Of a stretch of DNA of 64,000 nucleotides, positions 3,424 to 22,867 are shown piece after piece. Position 1 is the stretch's first letter, and the number at the start of each line of letters is the position of its first letter. The notes under the pieces are model-generated. The model searched no databases, was not told the origin of the DNA, and was given only the letters and a program-made list of their open reading frames with translations. The DNA is taken from the sequence record NC_049383.1. The stretch is one strand, 5' to 3'. The translations under genes and the position numbers were made by a program.

Positions 3424-4020
3424 TTAAAATTTTAAAAATGAAGGAAATAACTCATTACCAATAACTCGTATTCCACTATTCTCTAAATGTTTCATATAAT
3501 CTTTCTCAGTCCTTCCAAACATATTATTGAACCTACTTTCAACAACTTCGGGCATTAAGAAATAATACACTAAATCAGTTTTCGTATATCCTGATTTAAT
3601 ATAGTCCGCATATTCCTGAATATGGAAATTAAATGTTGGTGTTGAGTATATAATTAAATTACTCTGTTCAAGCACACTATTTGAAAGATTTTGTAAATAT
3701 TCGTGGAAGTAAATTTTTCTATTACTCAATAACTGATTAATGATGAAAAGTTCATCGATAAAAATATCAACCTTTTTATACTTATTATCTATCATAAATT
3801 TTTCACCACCTCTTGCGAAATTATGGTCAGCTAATTGTTCAGCACCTTTAATAATACATTTTCTCATACCACCTCTTCGAATAACATCTTCGAATTTTTT
3901 AACAGAAGCTCTATTATAAGTGATAATTAGACAAGCATCAGCAGTACTATTATTAACACCTTCAATAATAGATGTTGTTTTACCCACTTGTCTTTCGACA
4001 ATATAATGTTTAATATTCAT
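3424..4020 (-). CDS. Small P-loop NTPase-like protein
   Basis: ERQVGKTT (Walker A-like, terminase style) and IFIDE (Walker B-like). Confidence 0.45.
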   Translation of the reverse strand: MNIKHYIVERQVGKTTSIIEGVNNSTADACLIITYNRASVKKFEDVIRRGGMRKCIIKGAEQLADHNFARGGEKFMIDNKYKKVDIFIDELFIINQLLSNRKIYFHEYLQNLSNSVLEQSNLIIYSTPTFNFHIQEYADYIKSGYTKTDLVYYFLMPEVVESRFNNMFGRTEKDYMKHLENSGIRVIGNELFPSFLKF

Positions 4021-4024
4021 ATAT

Positions 4025-4297
4025 TTAAGTTTTTACGTTTACGTTTTTGATATTCATTCCTGTTTTGAATGAATCTTCATATTGTAGATTATTAATTACT
4101 CTAGTGAAATTTTCACCAACTATTTCGCCATTTTTATTTTCACAAAATGATGCACCCATACAGCAATAAAATTTATGGTCTTTCGGTATTTGCTTTTTAA
4201 TAGCGTCATTTATAAGTGGTTCATATTTATCAATTATAGCATCTATTTCTGATTGTGCCTCATTGATTAACCTTTTTACTTTACTAGAATTATACAT
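4025..4297 (-). CDS. Hypothetical protein
   Basis: 90-aa ORF, first gene of the minus-strand block. Confidence 0.65.
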   Translation of the reverse strand: MYNSSKVKRLINEAQSEIDAIIDKYEPLINDAIKKQIPKDHKFYCCMGASFCENKNGEIVGENFTRVINNLQYEDSFKTGMNIKNVNVKT

Positions 4298-4400
4298 TAT
4301 AATTATTTTTTCGCAAATATAATAAAAAATTTTTTAATAAAAAGTTTGTTTTGTAATATTTTAAGTATTAAGTTTGTATCGAATTAAAAAACATTTAAAA

Positions 4401-5009
4401 ATGGAAACAATATTTGAAAAAATTGAAGATTTAAAAAGACAAATTTCTGATAAAGAGGATTTATTGGAGACTTTAAAGAAATTATTCAAGGAAGAAAACC
4501 CATTCTTTCAAGATAATTATGATTTAAGAGAATTATATAATAGTGATACAATTATTTTCGAATCATATCTAAAAACATTTGTTGATTTAGTTAGTAAAGA
4601 TTACACACCTAGTCGAGATTCATTCTATGTACAAACATTCGGGAGTTGCTTTCCGAGACACGAACCTAGAAATAGAACAAGTGATATCAGTAAGAATTAT
4701 ATAACTTTTGAGATAGGTCAAAGCACAATGTATGAAAGGGTTGCATATGGTAGAACTTACGAAGAAATTGTTAAATTTATAACTTTACAAACAAGACCGA
4801 TTCGTGAAATTTGGGTTAAGTGTTTAAATAGGAAAAGTGATTTCAATTTTTCTTTGGAAGAGTTCAAAAAGTTATTAATTGATGGTGATTCAAAAACTTT
4901 AGAATATTTTAATGAGTTCATTGAATATAAATCGCTACCTTTGCATTCAATATTAGACGTAGATTATGAATTTAACATTTTTATAGCATATTATGAGCAA
5001 CGAAATTAA
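4401..5009 (+). CDS. Hypothetical protein
   Basis: Start moved to ATG 4401, downstream of the TAAGTTTG promoter element at 4369-4376. Confidence 0.7.
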   Translation: METIFEKIEDLKRQISDKEDLLETLKKLFKEENPFFQDNYDLRELYNSDTIIFESYLKTFVDLVSKDYTPSRDSFYVQTFGSCFPRHEPRNRTSDISKNYITFEIGQSTMYERVAYGRTYEEIVKFITLQTRPIREIWVKCLNRKSDFNFSLEEFKKLLIDGDSKTLEYFNEFIEYKSLPLHSILDVDYEFNIFIAYYEQRN

Positions 5010-7203
5010 GACAAGCATTAATCAAGGAACAGACTATAATGGCAACCCTACTTGGTTGGAACGTCAACAGGAAATGTTGGAAGATGAAGAAAATAAACTA
5101 AAATCTTCTGATGTTGATTTCTCACAACTTTCCGAAGCAGAACTAAATGAATGTTTGGTTAAGGCTGTTAGAAACATTATGAGTTGGCAAAACATCAAAA
5201 AAGACCGTTTAAAGCGACAAATTAAAGTTTGTATGCATATCATTAAGGCAATAGTTAAAGGTAAGAAAACATTTGTTGTTTCAGCACCAACAGGATTCGG
5301 TAAAACAATACTTGGATTAATGATTGATGAGTTTCTAAGGAATGCAGAAGATAAATTAAATGGTGAGGTTTTCGGGTCTTATATTTTAACACCTAACAAA
5401 TTCTTACAAGACCAATACAATGATGATTTGATTAGGTTTAATTTATCAAAAACTCATGCACAAGTAAAAGGACAATCAAACTATCCATGCTTAGAAAATA
5501 GAGAATTAACATTTGCAACAAGACCTTGTTCAAAGATTTCAATTTCGAAACTACCTAAGAAAATGTCTTGTGGTGAAATATGCCCATATGTTGTTGCTAG
5601 GAATAAAGCAATTTTAACTAAGACAACAATTTTCAATTATAACTACTATCTATCACAAATGAATAGTGTATTCCCAAAGTTACAAGGTGGTGCGCCTTTC
5701 AAACCTAGAACTGTTAGTATTTTTGATGAGTGTCATACAATGCCAAGCATTTTACAAGAAACATTCCAAAAGGAATATGAATTTTCTAAAATGGCTTATG
5801 AAATCCAAAGTAAGCTAAACCTTATAGAAAGTATGTATGGTGGTATTGTTTCAGACTATAGTAATGAACCAAAGTATAAAGAAATGATATCAAAGGTTCA
5901 GCAATTTATTGGATGGTTGGAAAAATCGGAAGTATTATTTTTAGAATTATGTGATAAGTCTTCTAGAGAAGATAATCCTTCAATGATGAATGAGAGACTT
6001 ATGAAAGTTATTTCAGTTGCAACAACTGGTTTAAACCATGTTCTTAAACTTTATACAGAAATTGTACAAGATAATTTTCCCGAAGAACAAATAGGAATTG
6101 AAATTGAATATACTGACGAGCAACAAAGTATTTTAGACCATATCGAATACTTATCAGAAATTATTGAAAGTAATGAATATCTAGAATTTCAAAATAAAAA
6201 GATTGGTTTACAGTATATGGTAGTTGATACTAAAGTTATTCAACAAAAAGAAGGTAAGTCTAAAAAGGTTGCTGTTTTCAGATGTGAAAAGACAGACGAT
6301 TTAAGTAAATTTCATGTTAATAGATTTTTAAATTATTCTGTTTTCATGTCCGCAACAATCGGTGACTCTCATAAAGAACTAATGCAATTTGCTGACGATT
6401 TAGGATTAGAAGATGTTCAAACTATTATCAATCAGTCTGATTTTGATTTCACAAAATCTCCAATTGTTCAGTTCGACCCACCTTTGAAACTAAATTTCAA
6501 AGAAAAAGAAACCAACCTTCCTAAAGTAATTAAAAGAATTGTTGATATTTCTCAATATCACCCTAAAGTTACTGGTTTGATTCATACAGGTAATTATGAG
6601 TTTCAAGATGCTTTAAAGGAATATTTAGAAAATAATGGTTTGGATGATAGATTTATTTTCTGTACAAACAATAAAGATAAGATGGAAGGTATAAGACAAA
6701 TAAACTGGGATTTGGAACACGCAGGATGGTCAAACAGAATCCTTGTTGGTGCTTCACTTTTAGAGGGTGTTGATTTAAAGGGTGATTTATGTAGATTTAA
6801 TATCTTTATGAAAGTTCCATACTTATCACTAGGTGATACACTTGTTAGACGTAAAATGAACAGGATTAAAACATGGTATGGATGGCAAACAATGATTTCA
6901 TTTTTACAGGGTATCGGTAGAGGTGTTAGAGCAAAAGATGATTGGTGTGTAACATATTTATTAGATGGTTCGTTTAAAGGATTCTTTTATAACTATGGTA
7001 TTTTACCAAGTATAATTAGAACAAGGTTGAGAAACACAACAATTTTTCAATATTTTCATGGAATGAATAAGGAAATAGTTTCACCACCACCAACACCACC
7101 ATTACCACCATTAGATGATACAGCCGAAAAAATACTTGACGAAGAGTATAAAGAGCTTAAACCGTTAGATATGTTTAGTGGTCTTTCAGGCGATTATGAA
7201 TAA
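4993..7203 (+). CDS. DinG/Rad3-like SF2 helicase with probable Fe-S cluster
   Basis: APTGFGKT, DECH, MSAT, EGVDLKGD and QGIGRGVRAKDD motifs; four Cys (C..C..C..C) between motifs I and II. Confidence 0.85.
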   Translation: MSNEIKTSINQGTDYNGNPTWLERQQEMLEDEENKLKSSDVDFSQLSEAELNECLVKAVRNIMSWQNIKKDRLKRQIKVCMHIIKAIVKGKKTFVVSAPTGFGKTILGLMIDEFLRNAEDKLNGEVFGSYILTPNKFLQDQYNDDLIRFNLSKTHAQVKGQSNYPCLENRELTFATRPCSKISISKLPKKMSCGEICPYVVARNKAILTKTTIFNYNYYLSQMNSVFPKLQGGAPFKPRTVSIFDECHTMPSILQETFQKEYEFSKMAYEIQSKLNLIESMYGGIVSDYSNEPKYKEMISKVQQFIGWLEKSEVLFLELCDKSSREDNPSMMNERLMKVISVATTGLNHVLKLYTEIVQDNFPEEQIGIEIEYTDEQQSILDHIEYLSEIIESNEYLEFQNKKIGLQYMVVDTKVIQQKEGKSKKVAVFRCEKTDDLSKFHVNRFLNYSVFMSATIGDSHKELMQFADDLGLEDVQTIINQSDFDFTKSPIVQFDPPLKLNFKEKETNLPKVIKRIVDISQYHPKVTGLIHTGNYEFQDALKEYLENNGLDDRFIFCTNNKDKMEGIRQINWDLEHAGWSNRILVGASLLEGVDLKGDLCRFNIFMKVPYLSLGDTLVRRKMNRIKTWYGWQTMISFLQGIGRGVRAKDDWCVTYLLDGSFKGFFYNYGILPSIIRTRLRNTTIFQYFHGMNKEIVSPPPTPPLPPLDDTAEKILDEEYKELKPLDMFSGLSGDYE

Positions 7204-7207
7204 AAAT

Positions 7208-7239
7208 AAAATCCGTTTCAGTTTGTTGAAACGGATTTT
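7208..7239 (+). terminator. Intrinsic terminator hairpin (AAAATCCG family)
   Basis: Perfect 13-bp stem aaaatccgtttca/tgaaacggatttt; loop gtttgt. Confidence 0.8.
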
Positions 7240-7244
7240 TTGTA

Positions 7245-7252
7245 TATATTTG
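7245..7252 (+). promoter_or_regulatory. Bacteroidota-type -7 promoter element (TATATTTG)
   Basis: Matches TAnnTTTG; TTTG upstream in the hairpin loop; ATG at 7274. Confidence 0.7.
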
Positions 7253-7273: not shown

Positions 7274-8089
7274 ATGAATCTATTAGATAAATTTAATAAT
7301 GTTACTGTAAATAATAGTACTCGAATAAAATCAGATGTTTTAGCCAAGCTTAAAGAATATGAGTCTTTCATGAACATAAAAATAAATGAACTGGAAGACC
7401 AAATAAAGTACCTAAAATCGTATAATGGTTATGATGGTACTTATTTTAAAAATGTTATTGATGAATTGGAGTTTAGAATTTTGACTAGAAAAAGAGATTT
7501 TTTATCTAAATCTGTTGATTGTATTGAGGAAAATTACTTTTTTAAGTTTGATTACTATAAAAGGTTTCAATATAATAGGAATTTAGATAGTTTAGAAACT
7601 CTTAATAAAATGTATATAACGGTTGAATCTGTTTTAGATAATCTTTTCAAAATGACAGAAAATAAATCATTAGAAGTCTATGAAAAGGAATATCTTAAAA
7701 AAGATTTCAAAGAAACATTTAAAAGTGGTAGAAGTTGGGATGAAACAGAATTTTCATTTGCTAAAAATGGTACAGTATCATTAACAAATTCATGTTATTT
7801 ACATACTCATTATGGTGGTGATACAGTAATAACATCAAGTAACTTGAAAATAGAATGTTTATTTAGAGCAATCAATTTATTCATTAATGATAGTGTTGAT
7901 TTACCAAAGGTTTTTGCAGAATATGCTATAGAAACTAGTAATGGTAATTTAGAATTAGAAAGAAAGTATAAACCTGATGATGATTCAATTCTTTGTAAAA
8001 TTGATATGAACCTAAATTCTACAATTAAATTTAGATTTACTGACGCTCAAAATGCTAAAAAATTTCTAGAATTTTATGATTTTGCTTAA
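7274..8089 (+). CDS. Hypothetical protein
   Basis: Start moved to 7274 because the longer ORF runs through a terminator and promoter. Confidence 0.7.
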   Translation: MNLLDKFNNVTVNNSTRIKSDVLAKLKEYESFMNIKINELEDQIKYLKSYNGYDGTYFKNVIDELEFRILTRKRDFLSKSVDCIEENYFFKFDYYKRFQYNRNLDSLETLNKMYITVESVLDNLFKMTENKSLEVYEKEYLKKDFKETFKSGRSWDETEFSFAKNGTVSLTNSCYLHTHYGGDTVITSSNLKIECLFRAINLFINDSVDLPKVFAEYAIETSNGNLELERKYKPDDDSILCKIDMNLNSTIKFRFTDAQNAKKFLEFYDFA

Positions 8090-8094
8090 TAAAC

Positions 8095-8102
8095 TATAAA
8101 TA
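8095..8102 (+). promoter_or_regulatory. T4-type late promoter TATAAATA
   Basis: Exact T4 late consensus 19 nt before the ATG at 8122; a gp55-like gene is present in the window. Confidence 0.55.
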
Positions 8103-8121
8103 TTCTAAACATTTTTAGATA

Positions 8122-8904
8122 ATGAACATTACAGAATACTTAGAAAATATTACAGAAACAAAGACCTCATGTTCATGTGGTCTTGTTTTTCAAGTTGAAG
8201 AGGCTTTAGATGGTGATTTAATTGATAAGAAAGGATATGATTTAAACGGTCGTTTCAAGTACTGGAACACAAAACTTTTCAAATCAAAGTTAAAAATAGA
8301 AGGTGGTATTAAATTTGGTAGAACAACTAAAAATGCTACTGGAACAACAACATCTTTAGTTATTAGGGATAAGAGAAATAAGAAAGTTTTCACATCTGTT
8401 AGAGAAACAAAAGTTGTAATATCTAATAAGATGAATTATACACAAGAAACTTTGGATAAAGTTTTGATACATGAATTAATTCACGTATATTTTGACGAAG
8501 TTAAAATGTATGATGAAGGTCACGGTAATAACTTTAAGAAGTTAGCTAGTGAGATTTCTAAACACATTGGGTTCGAGATTCCGTTAAAAGATAATTTTTC
8601 AGAGATTGATACTGATGTTGTTAAACCAAAAGAAGTTGGTGTTATTGTTTATGAATTTCCGCATAAAACAAATGTTACATTCATGAGCGTAAATGCATAT
8701 GATAAACATATTGCTGAATGGGAATTGGCAACATTACCAAAATATAATCTTGGTGAAGTTAAAATAACTCACGGTATAGCAAAAACATTATTAGGAGATA
8801 AATACCCTAAAGTAAGAAACCTTAAAAAATTAGCTTTATATCCAATAAGCACAGATGATGCATTGAATATGCCTTGGGTTAAAGCAGAAGAATTATTTTT
8901 ATAA
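8122..8904 (+). CDS. SprT-like zinc metalloprotease with N-terminal capsid-targeting-like peptide
   Basis: VLIHELIH...GHGNNFK is the SprT signature; N-terminus MNITEYLENITE. Confidence 0.7.
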   Translation: MNITEYLENITETKTSCSCGLVFQVEEALDGDLIDKKGYDLNGRFKYWNTKLFKSKLKIEGGIKFGRTTKNATGTTTSLVIRDKRNKKVFTSVRETKVVISNKMNYTQETLDKVLIHELIHVYFDEVKMYDEGHGNNFKKLASEISKHIGFEIPLKDNFSEIDTDVVKPKEVGVIVYEFPHKTNVTFMSVNAYDKHIAEWELATLPKYNLGEVKITHGIAKTLLGDKYPKVRNLKKLALYPISTDDALNMPWVKAEELFL

Positions 8905-9521
8905 TGTTAGGTTTAGAAAGATATATCATAGAATCTTTACAAGATGTAAAAACTATGAAGACGTTTAAAAAATGGTTTGGTAAGTCAAAACTTAAAAACA
9001 AAGATGGTTCACCAAAGGTTATGTATCACGGAACAAGAGCTGAATTTAATGAATTTAGAGTTAATAATGAACTTGGCGCGCATTTTGGTGATGAGGAAGC
9101 CGCGAACGCAATACTATATGGTTCAAGTGGTAAGATAATGGAAGTTTACCTTAGATGCGAGAATCCAATTAGAGTTGATGATATGTTAGCTTTTGATTTC
9201 CCTACATTATGTGAATATTTTGAAGAAGATGAACCGAATAAATTACCAAAGGAAGAACTTGAAAAAATATTGGAGTTTAAAAAGGAATGGATAGCAATTG
9301 AGTTTAATTCACCACAAGAAATAAGAAAATCTGAAAGGATGGAAAAAGAGGGTGAAATGATGTTTGTTAATTTGTTTAAGAAAATGGGTCACGATTCTGT
9401 AGTTTACAGAAATCAAAGAGAAGGTAAAGCTGATTCATATATTATTTTTGACCCAAATCAAGTAAAATCAATTTATAATGAAGGAAAATTTAGTAGAAAA
9501 GATAACAACATCTATAAGTAA
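8904..9521 (+). CDS. ADP-ribosyltransferase-like protein (ART-PolyVal type)
   Basis: FKKWFGKSK..KDGSPKVMYHGT, GAHFG, VYLRCENP and YIIFDPNQVKS match the ART domain of polyvalent proteins. Confidence 0.65.
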   Translation: MLGLERYIIESLQDVKTMKTFKKWFGKSKLKNKDGSPKVMYHGTRAEFNEFRVNNELGAHFGDEEAANAILYGSSGKIMEVYLRCENPIRVDDMLAFDFPTLCEYFEEDEPNKLPKEELEKILEFKKEWIAIEFNSPQEIRKSERMEKEGEMMFVNLFKKMGHDSVVYRNQREGKADSYIIFDPNQVKSIYNEGKFSRKDNNIYK

Positions 9522-10008
9522 AAAAGAATGGTTAAAAAACTCAATGATTAAGAAACCAGTTTTTCACGGAACAGGTACTTACTTTGAGATTTTCAATACT
9601 GATACTAAAACTGAATTTGGTTCACATTTCGGAACATTGGAGTGTGCAAAGTATGTAGCATATAGGAGAAGTAAAAGTCCTATAATATTGAATGTTTTTC
9701 TTAATTTAGAGAATGTTTATGAATTACCCGACTTAGGAAAGTTTACTATCGAAAGAGTTCTTAACCAATTACATAAAGATGGTATTTTCACTAAAGATGA
9801 AATTATTGAATACAATCAACTAAATGATGATGTTAAATTAGGTCTTATTAAAAAAGACTTGGTTAAAAATCATAATATTGATGGTTTCAAGTATATAAAT
9901 AATAGAGAAGATAATGGAAACTTCTCTTACATAGCATTTTACCCAAATCAGATAAAATCTATTTTCGGTGAAATGACAAACCCAGTATTAACAAATTTTT
10001 ATAAGTAA
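9478..10008 (+). CDS. Second ADP-ribosyltransferase-like paralog
   Basis: PVFHGT, GSHFG, VFLNLEN and YIAFYPNQIKS are colinear with the upstream paralog. Confidence 0.65.
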   Translation: MKENLVEKITTSISKKEWLKNSMIKKPVFHGTGTYFEIFNTDTKTEFGSHFGTLECAKYVAYRRSKSPIILNVFLNLENVYELPDLGKFTIERVLNQLHKDGIFTKDEIIEYNQLNDDVKLGLIKKDLVKNHNIDGFKYINNREDNGNFSYIAFYPNQIKSIFGEMTNPVLTNFYK

Positions 10009-10011
10009 AGT

Positions 10012-10092
10012 ATGAAAAAAGATTTAAGTTGGGATTTGAATTGGAATGTAATCGATTCAAATCAAATAAAAGGTATTGATGAATTAGTATAA
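10012..10092 (+). pseudogene. 26-aa micro-ORF resembling the ART C-terminal motif
   Basis: MKKDLSWDLNWNVIDSNQIKGIDELV, compared with IFDPNQVKSI and AFYPNQIKSI in the two ARTs. Confidence 0.3.
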
Positions 10093-10183
10093 AAGATACG
10101 GATTTTGTGGTTTCTTATTTGGAACTATATAAAAAATCTCACATTAAATTGTGGGATTTTTTTGTTTTTAAGTATTTTTGTAT

Positions 10184-10191
10184 TATATTTG
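10184..10191 (+). promoter_or_regulatory. Bacteroidota-type -7 element (TATATTTG)
   Basis: Follows the hairpin at 10131-10162; ATG at 10215. Confidence 0.7.
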
Positions 10192-10214: not shown

Positions 10215-11789
10215 ATGATTTTAAACCAAAAGAAACACGACCCATCAAAGTACGTTTTTGTTATTGACGGAAATTATTTGATGTCAAGAATGGCATTTGC
10301 TACTGGTCTAGACTTCTTTAAAAATCCTACATCAGACTCTAAAGAGTATTTTAAAGCATTGTGTAGTGGTTTTTCTAAATTAGTCACAGATTATATAGAT
10401 GCTATAGATGATGTTAAAATAGCAATAGATGGTTACTCATGGCGTAAGAAAGTGAAAATGATAGTACCTGAAATTTATAATGATTTACCAGTTGATAAAA
10501 GGACTTATAAAGCAAATCGTAACGTGGATGAAGTACCTATGGATATGAAAGTTGTAAAAACTGTATTCAATGACTTTGCTGATATGATGAAAGAAAAGTA
10601 TAACGTTCCAAAACTTTTAGCAGATAATGCCGAGGGTGATGATTTTCTTTATTATGCTATCAAAAAGGAAATTGAAAATGGTAGAAAAGTTCTTTTATAT
10701 ACATCCGATGGTGATGCACATCAATTAGCAAATGAAAATGTATTCATTCTAAAACAGATGCCAAACGATAGACCTAATAAATTGGTAATGTGTGAGAGTA
10801 AAAAAGATGAATTTTACCCAAATCATGGAAAGGAAACATCAGCTTTAGAAAGTTATTTTGGTGCTAATGATATTAAAACTTCTGATAATCTAGTTAAATA
10901 CTTTAAAGAAGATGATATCATGGTCGCAACACCTGCTGAATTTCTACTTCTTAAATCTATGAGTGGTGATAAAAAAGATAATATACCACCAACATTTGCG
11001 TGGAAAAAACAAGATAAAAATGGTCAGTTAAAAGAGTTCAAACCAACAATGATGTTTATCAAAAAAGGTCTTGAACGCATGGGTAAAACTATAGAAGATG
11101 TGACAGTTAAAGATTTATTCGACCCTAATTTTGTTAAGGATATTTGTGTAAATACTTTAAAATCAACACCTTTAATTGACAAGGTTAATGATTTTAAGAG
11201 GCAGTATAAAGAAAATATGAAGCACGTTTTCGATAAGAAGGGTGATTTCAATCAAATGTTGATAGATACTGTTTTGGGTTCAGAAGAAAAGGTTTTAGCA
11301 CCATTATACACAAATACAAAATTGGATGGAACTGTTTTAAGACCAACATTATCTCAATTGGAATATGCTTTAGAGGTTACAGAAATTTATATGAATAATA
11401 ACCCTGAAAGTAAGATTAAGTTGGAGCTAAAGAACAATGCATTCATTCAAAAGTTTTGTGAAGTTATGCATGAATCACATCCATTAATGCGTGATATAGA
11501 TTTAATCGTTAAAATTTTCATACAAAATAGAACTTTACTATATTTGAATGATAAAACTATTCCTGATTATGTTTTAAAGCAAATGGATGATTGTTACGAA
11601 TCTCAATCTAATTTGAGGTGTGAGGTTAGTGTTATTTCGGATTTCAAAAACTTAATTTCAACAGCACCAGTATCTGAAAGTATGTTTGATGCTATAGATG
11701 ATGATGTTGAAGATGAAGAAAGTGATGTTACAGAAGAGGAATTAGATGATTTATTAGGTGGTATTAGTGGTTTTGAAACTATGTTTTAG
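10215..11789 (+). CDS. rnh: 5'-3' exonuclease / T4 RNase H-like flap nuclease
   Basis: VIDGNYL, WRK, YKANR, EGDD, SDGD and GDKKDNIP motifs; start moved to 10215. Confidence 0.85.
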   Translation: MILNQKKHDPSKYVFVIDGNYLMSRMAFATGLDFFKNPTSDSKEYFKALCSGFSKLVTDYIDAIDDVKIAIDGYSWRKKVKMIVPEIYNDLPVDKRTYKANRNVDEVPMDMKVVKTVFNDFADMMKEKYNVPKLLADNAEGDDFLYYAIKKEIENGRKVLLYTSDGDAHQLANENVFILKQMPNDRPNKLVMCESKKDEFYPNHGKETSALESYFGANDIKTSDNLVKYFKEDDIMVATPAEFLLLKSMSGDKKDNIPPTFAWKKQDKNGQLKEFKPTMMFIKKGLERMGKTIEDVTVKDLFDPNFVKDICVNTLKSTPLIDKVNDFKRQYKENMKHVFDKKGDFNQMLIDTVLGSEEKVLAPLYTNTKLDGTVLRPTLSQLEYALEVTEIYMNNNPESKIKLELKNNAFIQKFCEVMHESHPLMRDIDLIVKIFIQNRTLLYLNDKTIPDYVLKQMDDCYESQSNLRCEVSVISDFKNLISTAPVSESMFDAIDDDVEDEESDVTEEELDDLLGGISGFETMF

Positions 11790-15722: not shown

Positions 15723-17276
15723 ATGCTTATAGACATTGTTCAACGAAAAGGGCGTGTTGAAGTTTCTTTTGTCGATAAAACAGGACAAATAGAATTAACA
15801 TCCATACCCACTACATTTGAGAATTGGGTTAAGTGTGATGAAGACGACCCACAAAAATCTAAAAAGTATCGAAACTGGACTGGTGAACCAGTTAAGAAGG
15901 TACATGATAGGGAATTTAAAGACTTGAATTTGCGTGAATTTTTATTACATAAAGTTCCGAAGGATATTCAAGAAAAGATTTTCGCTTATAATAAACCGAA
16001 TTGGTATGCTGTCGATATAGAGGTTGATGTTAGGAATTGTAATGGATTCCCTGAGCCAACAAAGGCTGAACACCCTATTTCAACAATTCAGGTAACAAAT
16101 CAACAACTTTCCACAGTTCTTTTGATTTTTGATGATATGAATCGTATTGAGGGAACACAGGAATATAAAGACTTTATTTCAGAAAGGGTTCGTAAACACT
16201 TTCAATCATCAAAAAAGGCACAAGATTTAATAAATAAGTATGCGAAGGATGGTGTTTTAAAATATGAACATATTGTTGTTAAGAGTGAGCGAGAATTATT
16301 AAAAGTTTATTTTGCTTTACAGAAAAAATCAATGCATCACATCATGGGTTGGAACTGGCTTGATTTCGATAGTCCTTATATTCATAAACGTGCTGTAAAA
16401 AATAATGTAAATCACTCAATGGCATCACCTGTTGGTGAGTTGGTGAATCGTGAAATATCTCGTGATAAGTTTGCTAAACATAAAGATTCAGAAAAGACAA
16501 AGGAAGATTTAGAACAAGAACGTAAGGAGCGAACATTTTCTACACCACGTCACAGAGTAGAAGTCGATTTGATGCAGGTTATAAATAAGTTCGATTATTC
16601 TATTGATAAAACATCATTAGCTTTAGATGCTATTGGATATCAAGCTGTTGATGTTCCGAAAATAAAGTATGATGGTAGTTTCCGTGATTTATTTTTAGAT
16701 ACAGATAATTTCCTTACATATTCGGCAGTAGATACGATTTTATTAATGATGGTTCACTTGCGTTTGAATACAATTACCTCATTGGAAATGGTTACATATT
16801 ATTCGAAAATTCCATTAGAGCGCGGATTTAGTACATTAGCTTTAGGTGATGCTATGTTTTGGGATGAACAATTTTCAAACGGATTGGTGTTTTGTCACGA
16901 AGATAGGTACTCAGATGATGATGATGGTGATACTGATTTTGAGGGTGGATATGTAATTAATCCTAGATATGCAACAGGTGAATGGGTTGCACTTGTTGAT
17001 TTTAAGTCGCTTTATCCAACTTGTGGTCAGTCTTTAGGTTGTTCTTTTGATAATATCATAAAAGAGAATGCTACGGATGAAGAAATAAAAGAGGCTATTA
17101 AACTTGGTCATAGAGTTTCAATGAATAGAACTATTTATGACAAAGATGATGATGGTACATTGACTCGTGTTTGGAATAGACTAATTTATGAGCGTTATCA
17201 CTTTAAGGATATTCGTTTATTTATTGATAATAAGATGCAACCAGTTATTAAAAAAATGATAGAAGCTCATGGATAA
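15723..17276 (+). CDS. Family-B DNA polymerase, N-terminal subunit (3'-5' exonuclease plus motif A; gp43A-like)
   Basis: ExoI VDIEVD, ExoII WNWLDFDSPYI, ExoIII YSAVD, motif A VDFKSLYP; ends in the fingers helix. Confidence 0.9.
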   Translation: MLIDIVQRKGRVEVSFVDKTGQIELTSIPTTFENWVKCDEDDPQKSKKYRNWTGEPVKKVHDREFKDLNLREFLLHKVPKDIQEKIFAYNKPNWYAVDIEVDVRNCNGFPEPTKAEHPISTIQVTNQQLSTVLLIFDDMNRIEGTQEYKDFISERVRKHFQSSKKAQDLINKYAKDGVLKYEHIVVKSERELLKVYFALQKKSMHHIMGWNWLDFDSPYIHKRAVKNNVNHSMASPVGELVNREISRDKFAKHKDSEKTKEDLEQERKERTFSTPRHRVEVDLMQVINKFDYSIDKTSLALDAIGYQAVDVPKIKYDGSFRDLFLDTDNFLTYSAVDTILLMMVHLRLNTITSLEMVTYYSKIPLERGFSTLALGDAMFWDEQFSNGLVFCHEDRYSDDDDGDTDFEGGYVINPRYATGEWVALVDFKSLYPTCGQSLGCSFDNIIKENATDEEIKEAIKLGHRVSMNRTIYDKDDDGTLTRVWNRLIYERYHFKDIRLFIDNKMQPVIKKMIEAHG

Positions 17277-20056: not shown

Positions 20057-22867
20057 ATGAAAAATTTTCAAAGTTTTGTAGATAAGTTCGTTGGAGAATC
20101 ACAATTAGGTGAGAACTTATTACAATTAAAGCCTATGTCTTCAAAAGGGGCATTGTACAAAATTAATGCGCTTAAACACTTCAACGAATCTGTAATCGAC
20201 ATACATTACATTGTTAATGATTTAGTGGTAGAAGGTATGAAATTACAAAACACGGACAAAAGTGTTTTCCAATTCGCTGATAATTTAAGAAATATGATTG
20301 TTGAAAATGAGAATGCATTTAATATTGCATTTTTATTTGAATCAATTGAGAAGTCACCAAGAAAATCAGAGATTGATGAAAGAACTCAAAATATTATTGA
20401 GTCTATAATCTTAGAAGGTGAATTAAAAATCGGAGCATCTGTAATGACAGGTGAATTATCAAGAAGTAAATTCTATTATAATGATTTAAGAAACATCGAG
20501 CAAAGAATAATTGAGAGTAATGCATCTAAAATGAAAGATGTTGTTACTTCTGATTTCGAGATTTCGACACCAGTTTCTTACGTTTTTGAAACAGAGCAAG
20601 GAAAAATCGTTAGAGTTCAGAATGATGTATTTTTAGTAACAGAAAGTGAAATTATACCAACACAAGCACCATCACAAGAATTTGTTACAATTTCTGAGAA
20701 TGCTAAAAATTTAAAATATAACAAAGATGGTCAAACAGTTTTAGATACCGCTTTAGGAACATTAGTTTTAGAAGGTGAGTCTTTAAGTGTTATTGATAAA
20801 GAAGGTGTTATCAATGAGAGTTTAAATTCAAAAGAATCAATCTTAAATGAGTTTGCTTTCCAAGTAAACGAAATGGGATTGAATGAATCTGAGTTAACTA
20901 AATTGGATGCATTTGTTGTTATTTCTGAAAATAGCGAAAACTTTAAGAGTTTAGAAAACTTCAAAGTTTTAAAGAATTTCACAACTGGTGATATTGGTAT
21001 GATTGCAACTGTTGGTAAAAATGTATTTGGTTCTATTTTGGAATCACAAAGAGTTTTCAAAGGTTCTAAGAATTTCGAAAGTATTACAGAAGCTGTAAAC
21101 TTCATGAATGAGAAAATCGGAGTTGATGCAACGCCTATTTTTGAGGGGGAAATGAAGGATGAAAAAGAAAAAGAAGATACTAAAAATGCAAAGGTTGCTG
21201 AAATAGATGAAAGTATTGCTAAATTAGAAGCTACAAGAACTAAAGTAGAAGAAGCTATGAAAACCACTACAGAAGGTTCAGAAGCTCATACAAAGTATTT
21301 AGAAATGTCTTCACAAGTTAGTGAGGAAATGACTAAGTTAAAGAAGAAAAAGAATGAAGTTCTTAACTTCGAAGGTGAAGAGGAAGAAGATGAAGAAGAG
21401 CAAATGGAAGAGTCTAAATCAGTATCGAAAATGAAAGTAGATATGAAGTTGGTTAAACAAGCTTTAGACAACTTTAAAGGTTTACAAACTACTAAAGGTG
21501 ATTTATTTGATATTTCTTATTTCCCTGATTTCACGGATGATGTTGATAAAGGTTATATGACTGGTTTAATTGGTAAAGTTGACCCTAATAAAGTTGATTT
21601 GGGATATTCTAAGAAGGATAATTTCTTTAGAGTTGCTTTATTTGACTATAAATTCAAGTTAATAAAATCTATTGATGAGATTGATACTAAAGAATCTGAT
21701 GCTTTAAAGTTTATCGGTGAATCTGAGGAAGAGGAAGAGGAAGAGAAAACTACCTACATGAAGTGTAAGGAAGAGCGTGATAAAATGGTTGAAGAAGGTA
21801 TTAAGATGAATAACTTAGATTGGGGTAAATCAACTGAGGAAAGAAATAAAAATCTTGAAGCTTATGATAAGTTGAAAACTGATGAAGAAAGAGAAGCTTT
21901 CAAAAAGAAGTTAAAAGGTATCAACGAATCTAAAGGTGACCAAGAAGAGTACCAAAAATTCTTTAAGAAGATGTTAAAGAAATATGGTGTTGAAGAGCCT
22001 GACCAATTAAAAGATGAAGACAAAAAGAAATTCTATGAGGAAGTAGATAAAGGTTGGAAATCTGACAAAGAAGAGTGTGGTGTTGATGAGAGTAGAATGC
22101 AAGATAATCCATTTTATATAGAGTTAGAATCTTTAAAAGTTGGTACTATTGTTAAAGGTGGTGTTATAAAAAGCATGAAAGCTAAACTTAAAACATACAC
22201 AAAAGTTGGCGACAATAAATGGGAGCGCGAAGGTGATGGTAAAGTATTTGAAACATCTAATGTTTATGTTAGCATTGGTGGTACTAACGTAACCATCATA
22301 GGTAAAGATGATAAATCGGGAACTGCTAAAATAGATGATACGAAAATCACTTACATAAAAGAAGGTGAAGATGAAAAAGAAGGTGAAGAGGAAAAAAACC
22401 GTATCAAAAACGAACCTGTAAAAGAAGGTGAAGAATCACCTGCCGATAAAATCGATTCTGAGGAAGAGGAAGAGGAAAAAGATGAAGATGGTGGAAAGAA
22501 GGATAAAGGTGATGTTAAAGTAGAAGAGTCTAATAAAGGACAAAACGGTGTTATCAAATTTGCATTTGATGATGATGAAAATGTTTTTTATAGTGATGGT
22601 TATAAGACTAAAATTCAAGTTATGGATGGTTCTTTTGACTATAGAAAGAAAGCTTGGGTTGAACCTGATTTCGAATCGGATGATTGGGAATACTTAAAAA
22701 AGGACTATGCTAAACAATTAAACAAGCAAGTTAAAGGAAAAACTTTCGTTTATGATGATAGTATATTAGAGTCTGAATGTGATGAAAAAGAGGTTGAAGA
22801 GAGTTATAAAGCTATCTTAACCAAAGCTAAAAACATTAATGAGTCTATCGAAGCTCTTTTAAATTAA
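20057..22867 (+). CDS. Large prohead core/internal protein with many protease-site-like motifs
   Basis: About 30 [ILVFN]xE[SGNT]-type motifs, acidic stretches, CTS-like N-terminus MKNFQSFV, late promoter upstream. Confidence 0.55.
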   Translation: MKNFQSFVDKFVGESQLGENLLQLKPMSSKGALYKINALKHFNESVIDIHYIVNDLVVEGMKLQNTDKSVFQFADNLRNMIVENENAFNIAFLFESIEKSPRKSEIDERTQNIIESIILEGELKIGASVMTGELSRSKFYYNDLRNIEQRIIESNASKMKDVVTSDFEISTPVSYVFETEQGKIVRVQNDVFLVTESEIIPTQAPSQEFVTISENAKNLKYNKDGQTVLDTALGTLVLEGESLSVIDKEGVINESLNSKESILNEFAFQVNEMGLNESELTKLDAFVVISENSENFKSLENFKVLKNFTTGDIGMIATVGKNVFGSILESQRVFKGSKNFESITEAVNFMNEKIGVDATPIFEGEMKDEKEKEDTKNAKVAEIDESIAKLEATRTKVEEAMKTTTEGSEAHTKYLEMSSQVSEEMTKLKKKKNEVLNFEGEEEEDEEEQMEESKSVSKMKVDMKLVKQALDNFKGLQTTKGDLFDISYFPDFTDDVDKGYMTGLIGKVDPNKVDLGYSKKDNFFRVALFDYKFKLIKSIDEIDTKESDALKFIGESEEEEEEEKTTYMKCKEERDKMVEEGIKMNNLDWGKSTEERNKNLEAYDKLKTDEEREAFKKKLKGINESKGDQEEYQKFFKKMLKKYGVEEPDQLKDEDKKKFYEEVDKGWKSDKEECGVDESRMQDNPFYIELESLKVGTIVKGGVIKSMKAKLKTYTKVGDNKWEREGDGKVFETSNVYVSIGGTNVTIIGKDDKSGTAKIDDTKITYIKEGEDEKEGEEEKNRIKNEPVKEGEESPADKIDSEEEEEEKDEDGGKKDKGDVKVEESNKGQNGVIKFAFDDDENVFYSDGYKTKIQVMDGSFDYRKKAWVEPDFESDDWEYLKKDYAKQLNKQVKGKTFVYDDSILESECDEKEVEESYKAILTKAKNINESIEALLN

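Follow-up and report, generated by a model that had tools for sequence, protein, structure and literature searches.

We analyzed a 64,000-nucleotide stretch of DNA (the window) that corresponds to bases 124,001-188,000 of the genome of Tenacibaculum phage pT24 (NC_049383 / LC168164), a jumbo myovirus of 234,670 bp with 28.7% G+C. Positions 8,095 to 10,008 of the window encode a member of the SprT-like zinc metallopeptidase family (gp155), followed by two diverged, free-standing ADP-ribosyltransferase (ART) paralogs of the ART-PolyVal family (gp156 and gp157). With moderate confidence, we propose that gp154-gp158 form an accessory unit that would be made in the infected cell along with the replication genes, would not be packaged, and would supply a SprT peptidase and two mono-ARTs for host takeover or anti-defense. 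The three central genes are as follows; coordinates are those of the window unless another sequence is named.

8122..8904, + strand: gp155, 260 aa, SprT-like zinc metallopeptidase (PF10263; HELIH at residues 117-121, H134)
8904..9521, + strand: gp156, 205 aa, stand-alone ART-PolyVal with H42 / H60 / D164 and QVKS (PF18760, fold model, column conservation)
9478..10008, + strand: gp157, 176 aa, stand-alone ART-PolyVal (FHGT, GSHFG, IDGFKY, PNQIKS) with a shorter insert (PF18760)

The stop codon of gp155 and the start codon of gp156 overlap by one base (TAATG), and the open reading frames (ORFs) of gp156 and gp157 overlap by 44 nt. The latter overlap is real, because the N-terminal residues of gp157 align to the family motif FKxWFGxSK. 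An initial annotation, made from the letters of the window and a list of its ORFs, had reported these ORFs, their overlaps, a TATAAATA box in front of gp155, and a set of protein motifs, all of which we recovered at the same positions. Apart from the TATAAATA box (see below), these features go far beyond what chance would produce. In GenBank record NC_049383, gp155 is labeled "SprT homologues" and gp156 and gp157 are labeled "P domain-containing"; for the latter two, "ART-PolyVal family ADP-ribosyltransferase" is an accurate label that should replace the uninformative one.

Family membership and catalytic residues of gp156 and gp157

Both proteins match the ART-PolyVal profile PF18760 above the Pfam cut-off of 31.2 (gp156, 73.8 bits, E 3.2e-20; gp157, 43.8 bits, E 5.6e-11), and they are its sole matches in the pT24 genome. 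They are 30% identical to each other (BLASTP E 8e-16), which agrees with their initial description as two tandem paralogs of this family, and both match positions 512-687 of PHROG 21376, a giant-protein family of 1664 positions. An alignment of gp156, gp157, and two database relatives was used to retrieve 72 viral loci, from which a 60-row domain alignment was built. About two thirds of the ART-bearing ORFs in these loci are 700-4000 aa long, in line with the earlier statement that ART-PolyVal occurs mostly inside giant polyvalent proteins. The typical members of the family (PF18760; a Tox-ART-HYD2-related clade; Iyer et al. 2017, PMC5512222) are domains of 1000-4000-aa virion effectors, whereas gp156 and gp157 do not have the build of polyvalent proteins, being free-standing, single-domain proteins of 176-205 aa with replication-gene neighbors and of the GxHFG rather than the Tyr type. 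They share with the family the FKxWFGxSK lead-in, the strand-1 His, an aromatic-type residue in strand 2, the invariant Asp before strand 5, and a C-terminal Q-[IV]-K-S. As far as our literature searches showed, ART-PolyVal itself is a prediction, and they turned up no member whose substrate has been demonstrated.

The motifs [YF]HGT, G[AS]HFG, and PNQ[VI]KS are present in gp156 and gp157. Conservation of single columns was counted over 68 ART domain copies and is given here in gp156 numbering.

H42 (strand 1): H in 63/68 domain copies
H60 (strand 2): Y in 26, H in 17, F in 16, and W in 9 of 68 domain copies
D164 (start of strand 5): D in 68/68 domain copies
Q186: Q in 67/68 domain copies
K188: K in 67/68 domain copies
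S189: S in 66/68 domain copies

According to the family's authors, who relate ART-PolyVal to protein-modifying ARTs, the catalytic triad consists of H in strand 1, Y in strand 2, and D in strand 5 (PMC5512222). The strand-1 His lies in YHGT in gp156 (H42) and in FHGT in gp157. The strand-5 Asp is D164 in gp156 (HDSVVY), with a matching D in gp157 (IDGFKY); D164 lies just before strand 5 of the gp156 model (see below) and therefore agrees with the position of the authors' Asp. The strand-2 residue is His in both gp156 (GAHFG) and gp157 (GSHFG), not the authors' Tyr. Judged from their sequences, gp156 and gp157 are thus of an H-H-D type in which every conserved position is intact, and both are predicted to be active. 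The motifs first listed for the pair covered strand 1, strand 2, and the C terminus and stand as such, but the invariant Asp had been overlooked. The initial annotation had taken the His of G[AS]HFG as a hint of an unusual substrate, a view that our data do not support. His is found at this position in 12/58 sampled domains, including domains within polyvalent proteins of 1171-2876 aa. A subclade that has domains of 734- to 2876-aa proteins among its members is recognizable by this His variant (GxHFG), which usually goes with YDG[IV]VY, and some proteins of the subclade carry polyvalent-protein domains such as LPD38. The strand-2 His is a lineage trait and not a peculiarity of pT24, because the subclade spans other proteins, giant ones included; AcrIF11, with its H-F-H-D residues, is likewise noncanonical (PMC12421852).

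Fold of gp156

The AlphaFold model of gp156, built from the 60-row alignment, has a predicted local distance difference test score (pLDDT) of 92.9 and a predicted template modeling score (pTM) of 0.86. Its strands comprise residues 40-44 (MYHGT), 59-62 (AHFG), 77-83, 88-91, 165-169, and 177-181. A three-helix insert is found at 99-160 (the insert as a whole covering about residues 96-161), D164 directly precedes strand 5, and QVKS follows strand 6. When the model was compared with the PDB using Foldseek, the best match was 6kyf (AcrIF11Pae1; E 1e-3, template modeling [TM] score 0.33/0.45), followed by a cyanophage A4 pre-ejectosome chain, RES toxins, PARP4, tankyrase 2, exotoxin A, diphtheria toxin, and MbcT. 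VIA-align was run over 48,161 chains and gave the following matches.

Cyanophage A4 ejection protein (PDB 9K3A chain B): Z 8.0, 131 aligned residues, root mean square deviation (rmsd) 3.8, 16% identity
PARP1: Z 7.1, 105 aligned, rmsd 3.3
Tankyrase 1: Z 7.0, 101 aligned, rmsd 3.4
Diphtheria toxin: Z 5.8, 117 aligned, rmsd 4.0
MbcT: Z 5.7, 114 aligned, rmsd 4.4

The lower VIA-align ranks also hold PARP2/3/4/10/13, interleaved with unrelated helical bundles that match the insert alone. By its model, gp156 has an ADP-ribosyltransferase fold. The initial annotation had named the lack of such a fold in a structure search as an outcome that would speak against it; what we found is the opposite, since the ART superfamily fills the full-length matches. 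At the sequence level, the gp156/gp157 profile gave no significant match to any solved structure in the PDB, and 6KYF was not recovered at E values up to 10.

Two of these structural relatives are phage proteins. AcrIF11Pae1 (6KYF) is a mono-ART of phages and plasmids that ADP-ribosylates the Csy complex; its key residues are H-F-H-D instead of the canonical H-Y-Y-E, D115 is essential, and a poorly conserved helical region has been proposed to give target specificity (PMC12421852). It resembles gp156 in its small size, its occurrence as a stand-alone phage ART, its catalytic Asp, and its helical region, which is variable and separates the halves of the sheet. Unlike gp156, to which it has no detected sequence similarity and a TM score of only 0.33/0.45, it targets Cas8f (type I-F), which is not expected in the host of pT24. 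The likeness may therefore serve as a working analogy and does not amount to membership. The cyanopodophage A4 ejection protein (9K3A chain B) differs from gp156 in that the matching domain is part of a large packaged pre-ejectosome protein, again with no match at the sequence level. The term "ADP-ribosyl" is absent from the text of the article on this protein (PMC12002296). A packaged ART-like domain (residues ~946-1600) may thus have gone unremarked, because the article never mentions ADP-ribosylation.

The SprT-like protease and its association with ART genes

The initial assignment of the 8122-8904 ORF to the SprT-like family is supported by a match of gp155 to Pfam profile PF10263 at 39.7 bits (cut-off 25.6; E 4.9e-10), the only one in the genome. 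HELIH occupies residues 117-121 (nt 8470-8484), and EGHG supplies the third His, H134. The active-site segment aligns to human Spartan (6mdx, E 0.0023; 6mdw, E 0.0037), with which gp155 shares HExxH and the third His, and H117, E118, H121, H134, and a CxC motif (C17/C19) are invariant in 3 homologues. The AlphaFold (AF2) model of gp155, based on 3 sequences, is poor (pLDDT 53.6). The C-terminal 110 residues are kept within the lineage and form a lineage-specific half without a recognizable family; comparison of residues 150-260 with the Atlas gave scores that were all <0.9, that is, only subthreshold leads. SprT-like peptidases have already been recorded, in 1-3 copies, in group 2.2 jumbo phages, where they were proposed to cleave host proteins (PMC7824862). 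Spartan-type proteases are DNA dependent, and the Spartan-like metalloprotease domain of ArdC from plasmid R388 illustrates that such a domain can serve anti-restriction on a mobile element (PMC7213743). In contrast to SprT, Spartan, Wss1, and ArdC, gp155 has no zinc ribbon, Spartan zinc-binding subdomain, or ArdC-type single-stranded DNA-binding domain that Pfam or Atlas searches could detect. The DNA dependence that had been attributed to SprT proteases in general is established for eukaryotic Spartan and Wss1, not for phage SprT proteins; no zinc ribbon or DNA-binding module was detected in gp155.

SprT and the first ART gene are translationally coupled in pT24 (TAATG) and in the related metagenomic locus L005 (4-nt overlap). 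We saw this pairing in no other genome; phages PTm1 and PTm5 and the metagenomic phage contig L081 encode SprT alone. (i) The SprT proteins of PTm1 and PTm5 are 42% identical to gp155 and are encoded among small genes near an AAA ATPase and ribonucleotide reductase (RNR), without an ART; in PTm1, an ART was found neither beside SprT nor elsewhere in the whole genome. (ii) The L081 protein is 37% identical to gp155, and its gene adjoins genes for an RNA ligase and a deaminase; ART-PolyVal is not among the families on record for the called genes of this contig, for which no ART-profile scan was made. (iii) A jackhmmer search with gp155 over all ORFs of 74 loci (L005-L078) retrieved SprT in L005 only. 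(iv) Pfam scans detected no SprT domain in 30 neighbors of 12 other stand-alone ARTs or in six giant proteins with His-type ARTs. The neighbors of the other stand-alone ARTs are mixed and include an SU10 portal, GNAT and ankyrin proteins, a ClpB-like ATPase, DnaJ, SegE, and a T4 baseplate protein.

Two of the latter loci have a head-morphogenesis context that is unlike that of pT24. In both, a Trp-type small ART (YTGS, without the strand-1 His) lies beside an SU10-type portal gene: it directly follows this gene in L060 (2319-5296) and lies two genes before a 700-aa, portal-sized ORF in L063 (5678-10287).

Two ART sublineages, a variable insert, and a probable relic of a third copy

In phylogenetic trees, gp156 groups with the single ART of L005 (Shimodaira-Hasegawa-like approximate likelihood ratio test [SH-aLRT] support, 95-96). 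gp157 sits on a long branch; its nearest relative, with which it groups (SH-aLRT 97), is the C-terminal ART domain in a 734-aa phage protein of locus L017, to which it is 35% identical with the insert included. In the approximately unbiased (AU) test, a single clade formed by the pT24 and L005 ARTs was not rejected (p 0.079). Based on these trees, gp156 and gp157 may stem from an old duplication or from separate acquisition. A recent tandem duplication, which we also considered, is unsupported in view of the grouping of gp157 with L017 but may still apply, given the AU result for one clade.

The helical insert is the fastest-diverging part of these ARTs. gp156 and its L005 ortholog are 48% identical overall, with 55-76% identity in the core and 26% in the insert, and the inserts of gp156 and gp157 are 24% identical with 13 gap columns.

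A short ORF follows gp157:

10012..10092, + strand: gp158, 26 aa, containing ..DSNQIKGI.., probable relic of a third ART copy (motif, DNA alignment)

When the whole genome is translated in six frames, the pattern NQ[IV]K[SGAT]I is found only three times, namely, in gp156, gp157, and gp158, whereas 0.05 occurrences are expected from shuffled sequences. These data suggest that gp158 is probably the C-terminal stump of a decayed third tandem ART gene. ART copy number thus varies from 0 in PTm1 (whole genome) and 1 in L005 to 2 plus the relic in pT24. Other large phage contigs also carry arrays of stand-alone ART-PolyVal genes, with 2 copies in L007, 3 in L056, and 2 in L066, and small ART arrays may be a recurrent feature of big phages. 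These arrays are found at positions 5992-7700 of L007, 3020-6930 of L056 (a 306-kb viral contig), and 5118-6684 of L066; the ARTs of L066 adjoin genes for a GNAT acetyltransferase and an ankyrin-repeat protein.

Unit borders and promoter boxes

The unit is delimited by hairpins, and the elements that flank or precede its genes are listed below.

7208..7239, + strand: terminator-like hairpin 3' of the helicase gene gp153, upstream border of the unit (14-pair stem, then a T run)
7245..7252, + strand: TATATTTG, Bacteroidetes-type -7 promoter box, 21 nt 5' of the gp154 ATG
7274..8089, + strand: gp154, 271 aa, first gene of the unit, DUF4942-like as a lead only (feature score, predicted structure)
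8095..8102, + strand: TATAAATA box, not backed as a specific (late) promoter, 19 nt between the box and the ATG at 8122
10131..10162, + strand: terminator-like hairpin, downstream border of the unit (13-pair stem, then a T run)
10184..10191, + strand: TATATTTG box of the next unit, serving gp159 (5'-3' exonuclease, 10215-11789)

The octamer TATATTTG is present in 72 copies genome-wide, 31 of which (43%) lie 17-54 nt upstream of ORF starts in the right orientation, compared with 5-18% for control octamers. It directly follows both border hairpins and precedes gp154, gp159, the DNA polymerase gene at 15723, the gp034 helicase gene, and many small genes of the presumed early arm. It fits the TAnnTTTG -7 consensus of Bacteroidetes promoters. 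From motif placement, TATATTTG is likely to mark the host-type (Bacteroidetes -7 box) promoter class that the phage uses for its early and replication genes. The genes next to gp154-gp158 encode a helicase, the 5'-3' exonuclease, DNA polymerase, and ligase. Its position among these replication genes and its punctuation, which is like theirs, favor transcription of the unit by the host polymerase in the early or middle phase of infection and lend no support to packaging.

The same punctuation, consisting of a G+C-poor hairpin with a T run and then TATATTTG some 20-35 nt before the next ATG, recurs in the window at 7208-7252, 10131-10191, 15687, 51865, 53858, 56504, and 58258 and is also seen genome-wide.

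The initial annotation had read the genes as a late operon headed by a TATAAATA box, and this reading is not borne out. There are 27 copies of TATAAATA in the window against 18.8 ± 4.4 expected, which is indistinguishable from background. Over the entire genome, 18% of its copies are followed by an ORF within 60 nt, which is barely above the 15% of the control octamer AATAAATA, and it precedes the genes for the RNR small subunit, RNA ligase, and an esterase, among others. We therefore rejected TATAAATA as a T4-like late promoter, and the unit starts behind a hairpin and TATATTTG, as replication genes do.

Proposed function and alternatives

Under the proposal made above, gp155 would act as a SprT-type zinc metallopeptidase that is translationally coupled to the free-standing mono-ARTs gp156 and gp157. 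Each ART would bind NAD+ in the cleft of a split beta-sheet through the His of [YF]HGT in strand 1 and that of G[AS]HFG in strand 2, and with the invariant strand-5 Asp (D164 in gp156) it would attach ADP-ribose to a macromolecule of the host, which is most likely a protein. Target selection may lie with the helical insert that separates strands 4 and 5; because this insert differs in length between gp156 and gp157, the two enzymes are expected to hit different targets. For the peptidase gp155, the expected substrate is a protein of the host, possibly one bound to DNA. The purpose may be host takeover or the neutralization of a host defense, for which T4 ModA/ModB, early and unpackaged tandem ARTs, and AcrIF11, which disables a CRISPR complex, may serve as models. 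ModA and ModB are made after infection, are not packaged, and retarget host proteins (PMC5512222, PMC9503650). Like gp156 and gp157, T4 ModA/ModB (and Alt) are encoded by adjacent paralogous phage genes, but they belong to a different ART clade (R-S-E, Alt/VIP2) than the H-H-D pair of pT24, in whose genome the Alt-type profile PF03496 has no match. The variable ART copy number and the occurrence of SprT alone elsewhere fit an accessory element with arms-race behavior. A more specific version strikes us as rather unlikely: gp156 and gp157 would be unpackaged, AcrIF11-like H-H-D anti-defense enzymes, each ADP-ribosylating, by way of its insert, a different Tenacibaculum immune or DNA-transaction protein, SprT would remove the marked or DNA-bound target, and the locus, with two live copies of different sublineages and a dead third one, would be a turnover-prone array that tracks host defenses.

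A number of observations weigh against the proposal of an accessory unit expressed with the replication genes. Gene structure, family membership, ART fold, intact conserved residues, unit borders, neighborhood, and variable copy number were established directly, but for enzymatic activity, substrate class, timing, and protease-ART cooperation the proposal goes beyond them by inference. As to timing, the evidence consists of a promoter motif and the gene neighborhood, and one gene annotated as "virion structural protein" also sits behind a TATATTTG box. Cooperation of gp155 with gp156/gp157 is possible but weakly grounded, because the pairing is seen in two related genomes only. The fold scores are middling (Z at most 8; Foldseek TM 0.3-0.45), and the model covers gp156 alone. 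Finally, injection is predicted for the proteins in which most ART-PolyVal domains reside, VIA-align matched gp156 best to a domain of a packaged protein, the ejection protein of cyanophage A4 (PMC12002296), and a baseplate gene pair lies 2.8 kb downstream of the unit on the opposite strand. These last three points also favor delivery in the virion, as had initially been supposed, with gp155-gp157 made late, packaged in the head, and injected with the DNA as a split, minimal polyvalent effector that acts in the first minutes of infection. The combination of a metallopeptidase with an ART, a frequent hub in polyvalent proteins (PMC5512222), the adjacency of some small ARTs (L060, L063) to an SU10-type portal gene, and the TATAAATA box in front of gp155 point in the same direction. 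We nevertheless consider virion delivery improbable. None of the three proteins is fused to MuF or a portal, has an additional N-terminal domain or a polyvalent-associated domain from Pfam, or is a multidomain protein; the unit lies between the helicase and 5'-3' exonuclease genes, with DNA polymerase and ligase genes nearby, and its promoter is of the type that serves the DNA polymerase gene. TATAAATA shows no enrichment and is found in front of genes for nucleotide metabolism, and the zincin of polyvalent proteins belongs to a family other than SprT; among the 72 related loci, a SprT-like domain was found in L005 alone.

Two further alternatives concern the chemistry of the ARTs. In one of them, the enzymes would modify DNA or RNA, by chemistry like that of DarT, pierisin/Scabin, or Tpt1, while SprT would act on DNA-bound proteins at the replication fork. 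This would suit a unit located in a replication block (helicase, FEN-type exonuclease, polymerase, ligase). The pair of His residues (YHGT ... GAHFG) resembles the HGT / VHLS motifs of Tpt1, and the sole ART-superfamily matches of the profile in the PDB are RNA 2'-phosphotransferases, aligned across the HGT...H motifs at E 0.55-0.65. This similarity is, however, not significant, and the Tpt1/KptA profile PF01885 has no match in the pT24 genome. The DNA dependence of Spartan-type proteases (PMC7213743) is a further argument for nucleic-acid substrates, but the top fold matches are protein-modifying ARTs and NADases, with no DarT or pierisin-type chain, and the family's authors place ART-PolyVal with protein-modifying clades (PMC5512222). 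Moreover, Y, F, or W takes the place of the strand-2 His in other members of the family, which suggests a generic stacking role, and we assign only a low probability to modification of DNA or RNA. Alternatively, the ART-like proteins could lack transferase activity and act, like RES and MbcT, as glycohydrolases or phosphorylases of NAD+, or they could be catalytically dead binders. They would then deplete or alter the NAD+ pool, with NAD-dependent host defenses as one possible target. RES toxins and MbcT are indeed among the fold matches, and no macrodomain, ARH, or NAD-salvage gene that could be the counterpart of a reversible modification was detected in the phage. Depletion of NAD+ would nonetheless harm the phage's own NAD-dependent DNA ligase (gp006), all family-specific residues are intact, and the presence of two diverged copies whose inserts evolve fast is more in keeping with target recognition than with hydrolysis of a small molecule; we thus regard this possibility as very unlikely.

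Relevance

Both protein families, the SprT peptidases of jumbo phages, and surveys of viral ARTs have been published (PMC7824862, PMC5512222, PMC9503650), and the genes studied here are annotated. To this, the present analysis adds the definition of the H-H-D subclade, the origin of the pair from two sublineages, the probable relic of a third copy, and a promoter context of the replication type. Few of the effector domains predicted in phages and conjugative elements are as common as ART-PolyVal. Because small, soluble, single-domain proteins are far easier to purify and assay than domains within proteins of 2000-4000 aa, gp156 and gp157 could provide the first biochemistry for the family. They differ mainly in one helical insert and so offer a natural experiment on target choice, of the kind proposed for AcrIF11. 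If the more specific anti-defense version described above is true, ART-PolyVal domains, including those of giant injected proteins, would represent a large reservoir of enzymatic anti-defense activities.

Other genes of the unit and the genome

A PADLOC scan gave no meaningful match, and profile searches of the pT24 genome detected no Macro, ARH, or NAPRTase gene, nor was another gene for NAD salvage detected. The genome encodes two DNA ligases, the NAD-dependent gp006 (3857-5761 of the genome) and gp169, annotated as "DNA ligase 1" (20057-22867 of the window). The first gene of the unit, gp154, has no Pfam match; compared with DUF4942 (PF13708)-bearing clusters of the Atlas, it reached a language-model feature score of 0.96 and predicted-structure TM scores of 0.67-0.69. 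A homologue of gp154 is located 3' of the helicase gene in PTm1 as well and 5' of SprT in L005. In some Atlas clusters, DUF4942 is fused to methyltransferase domains.

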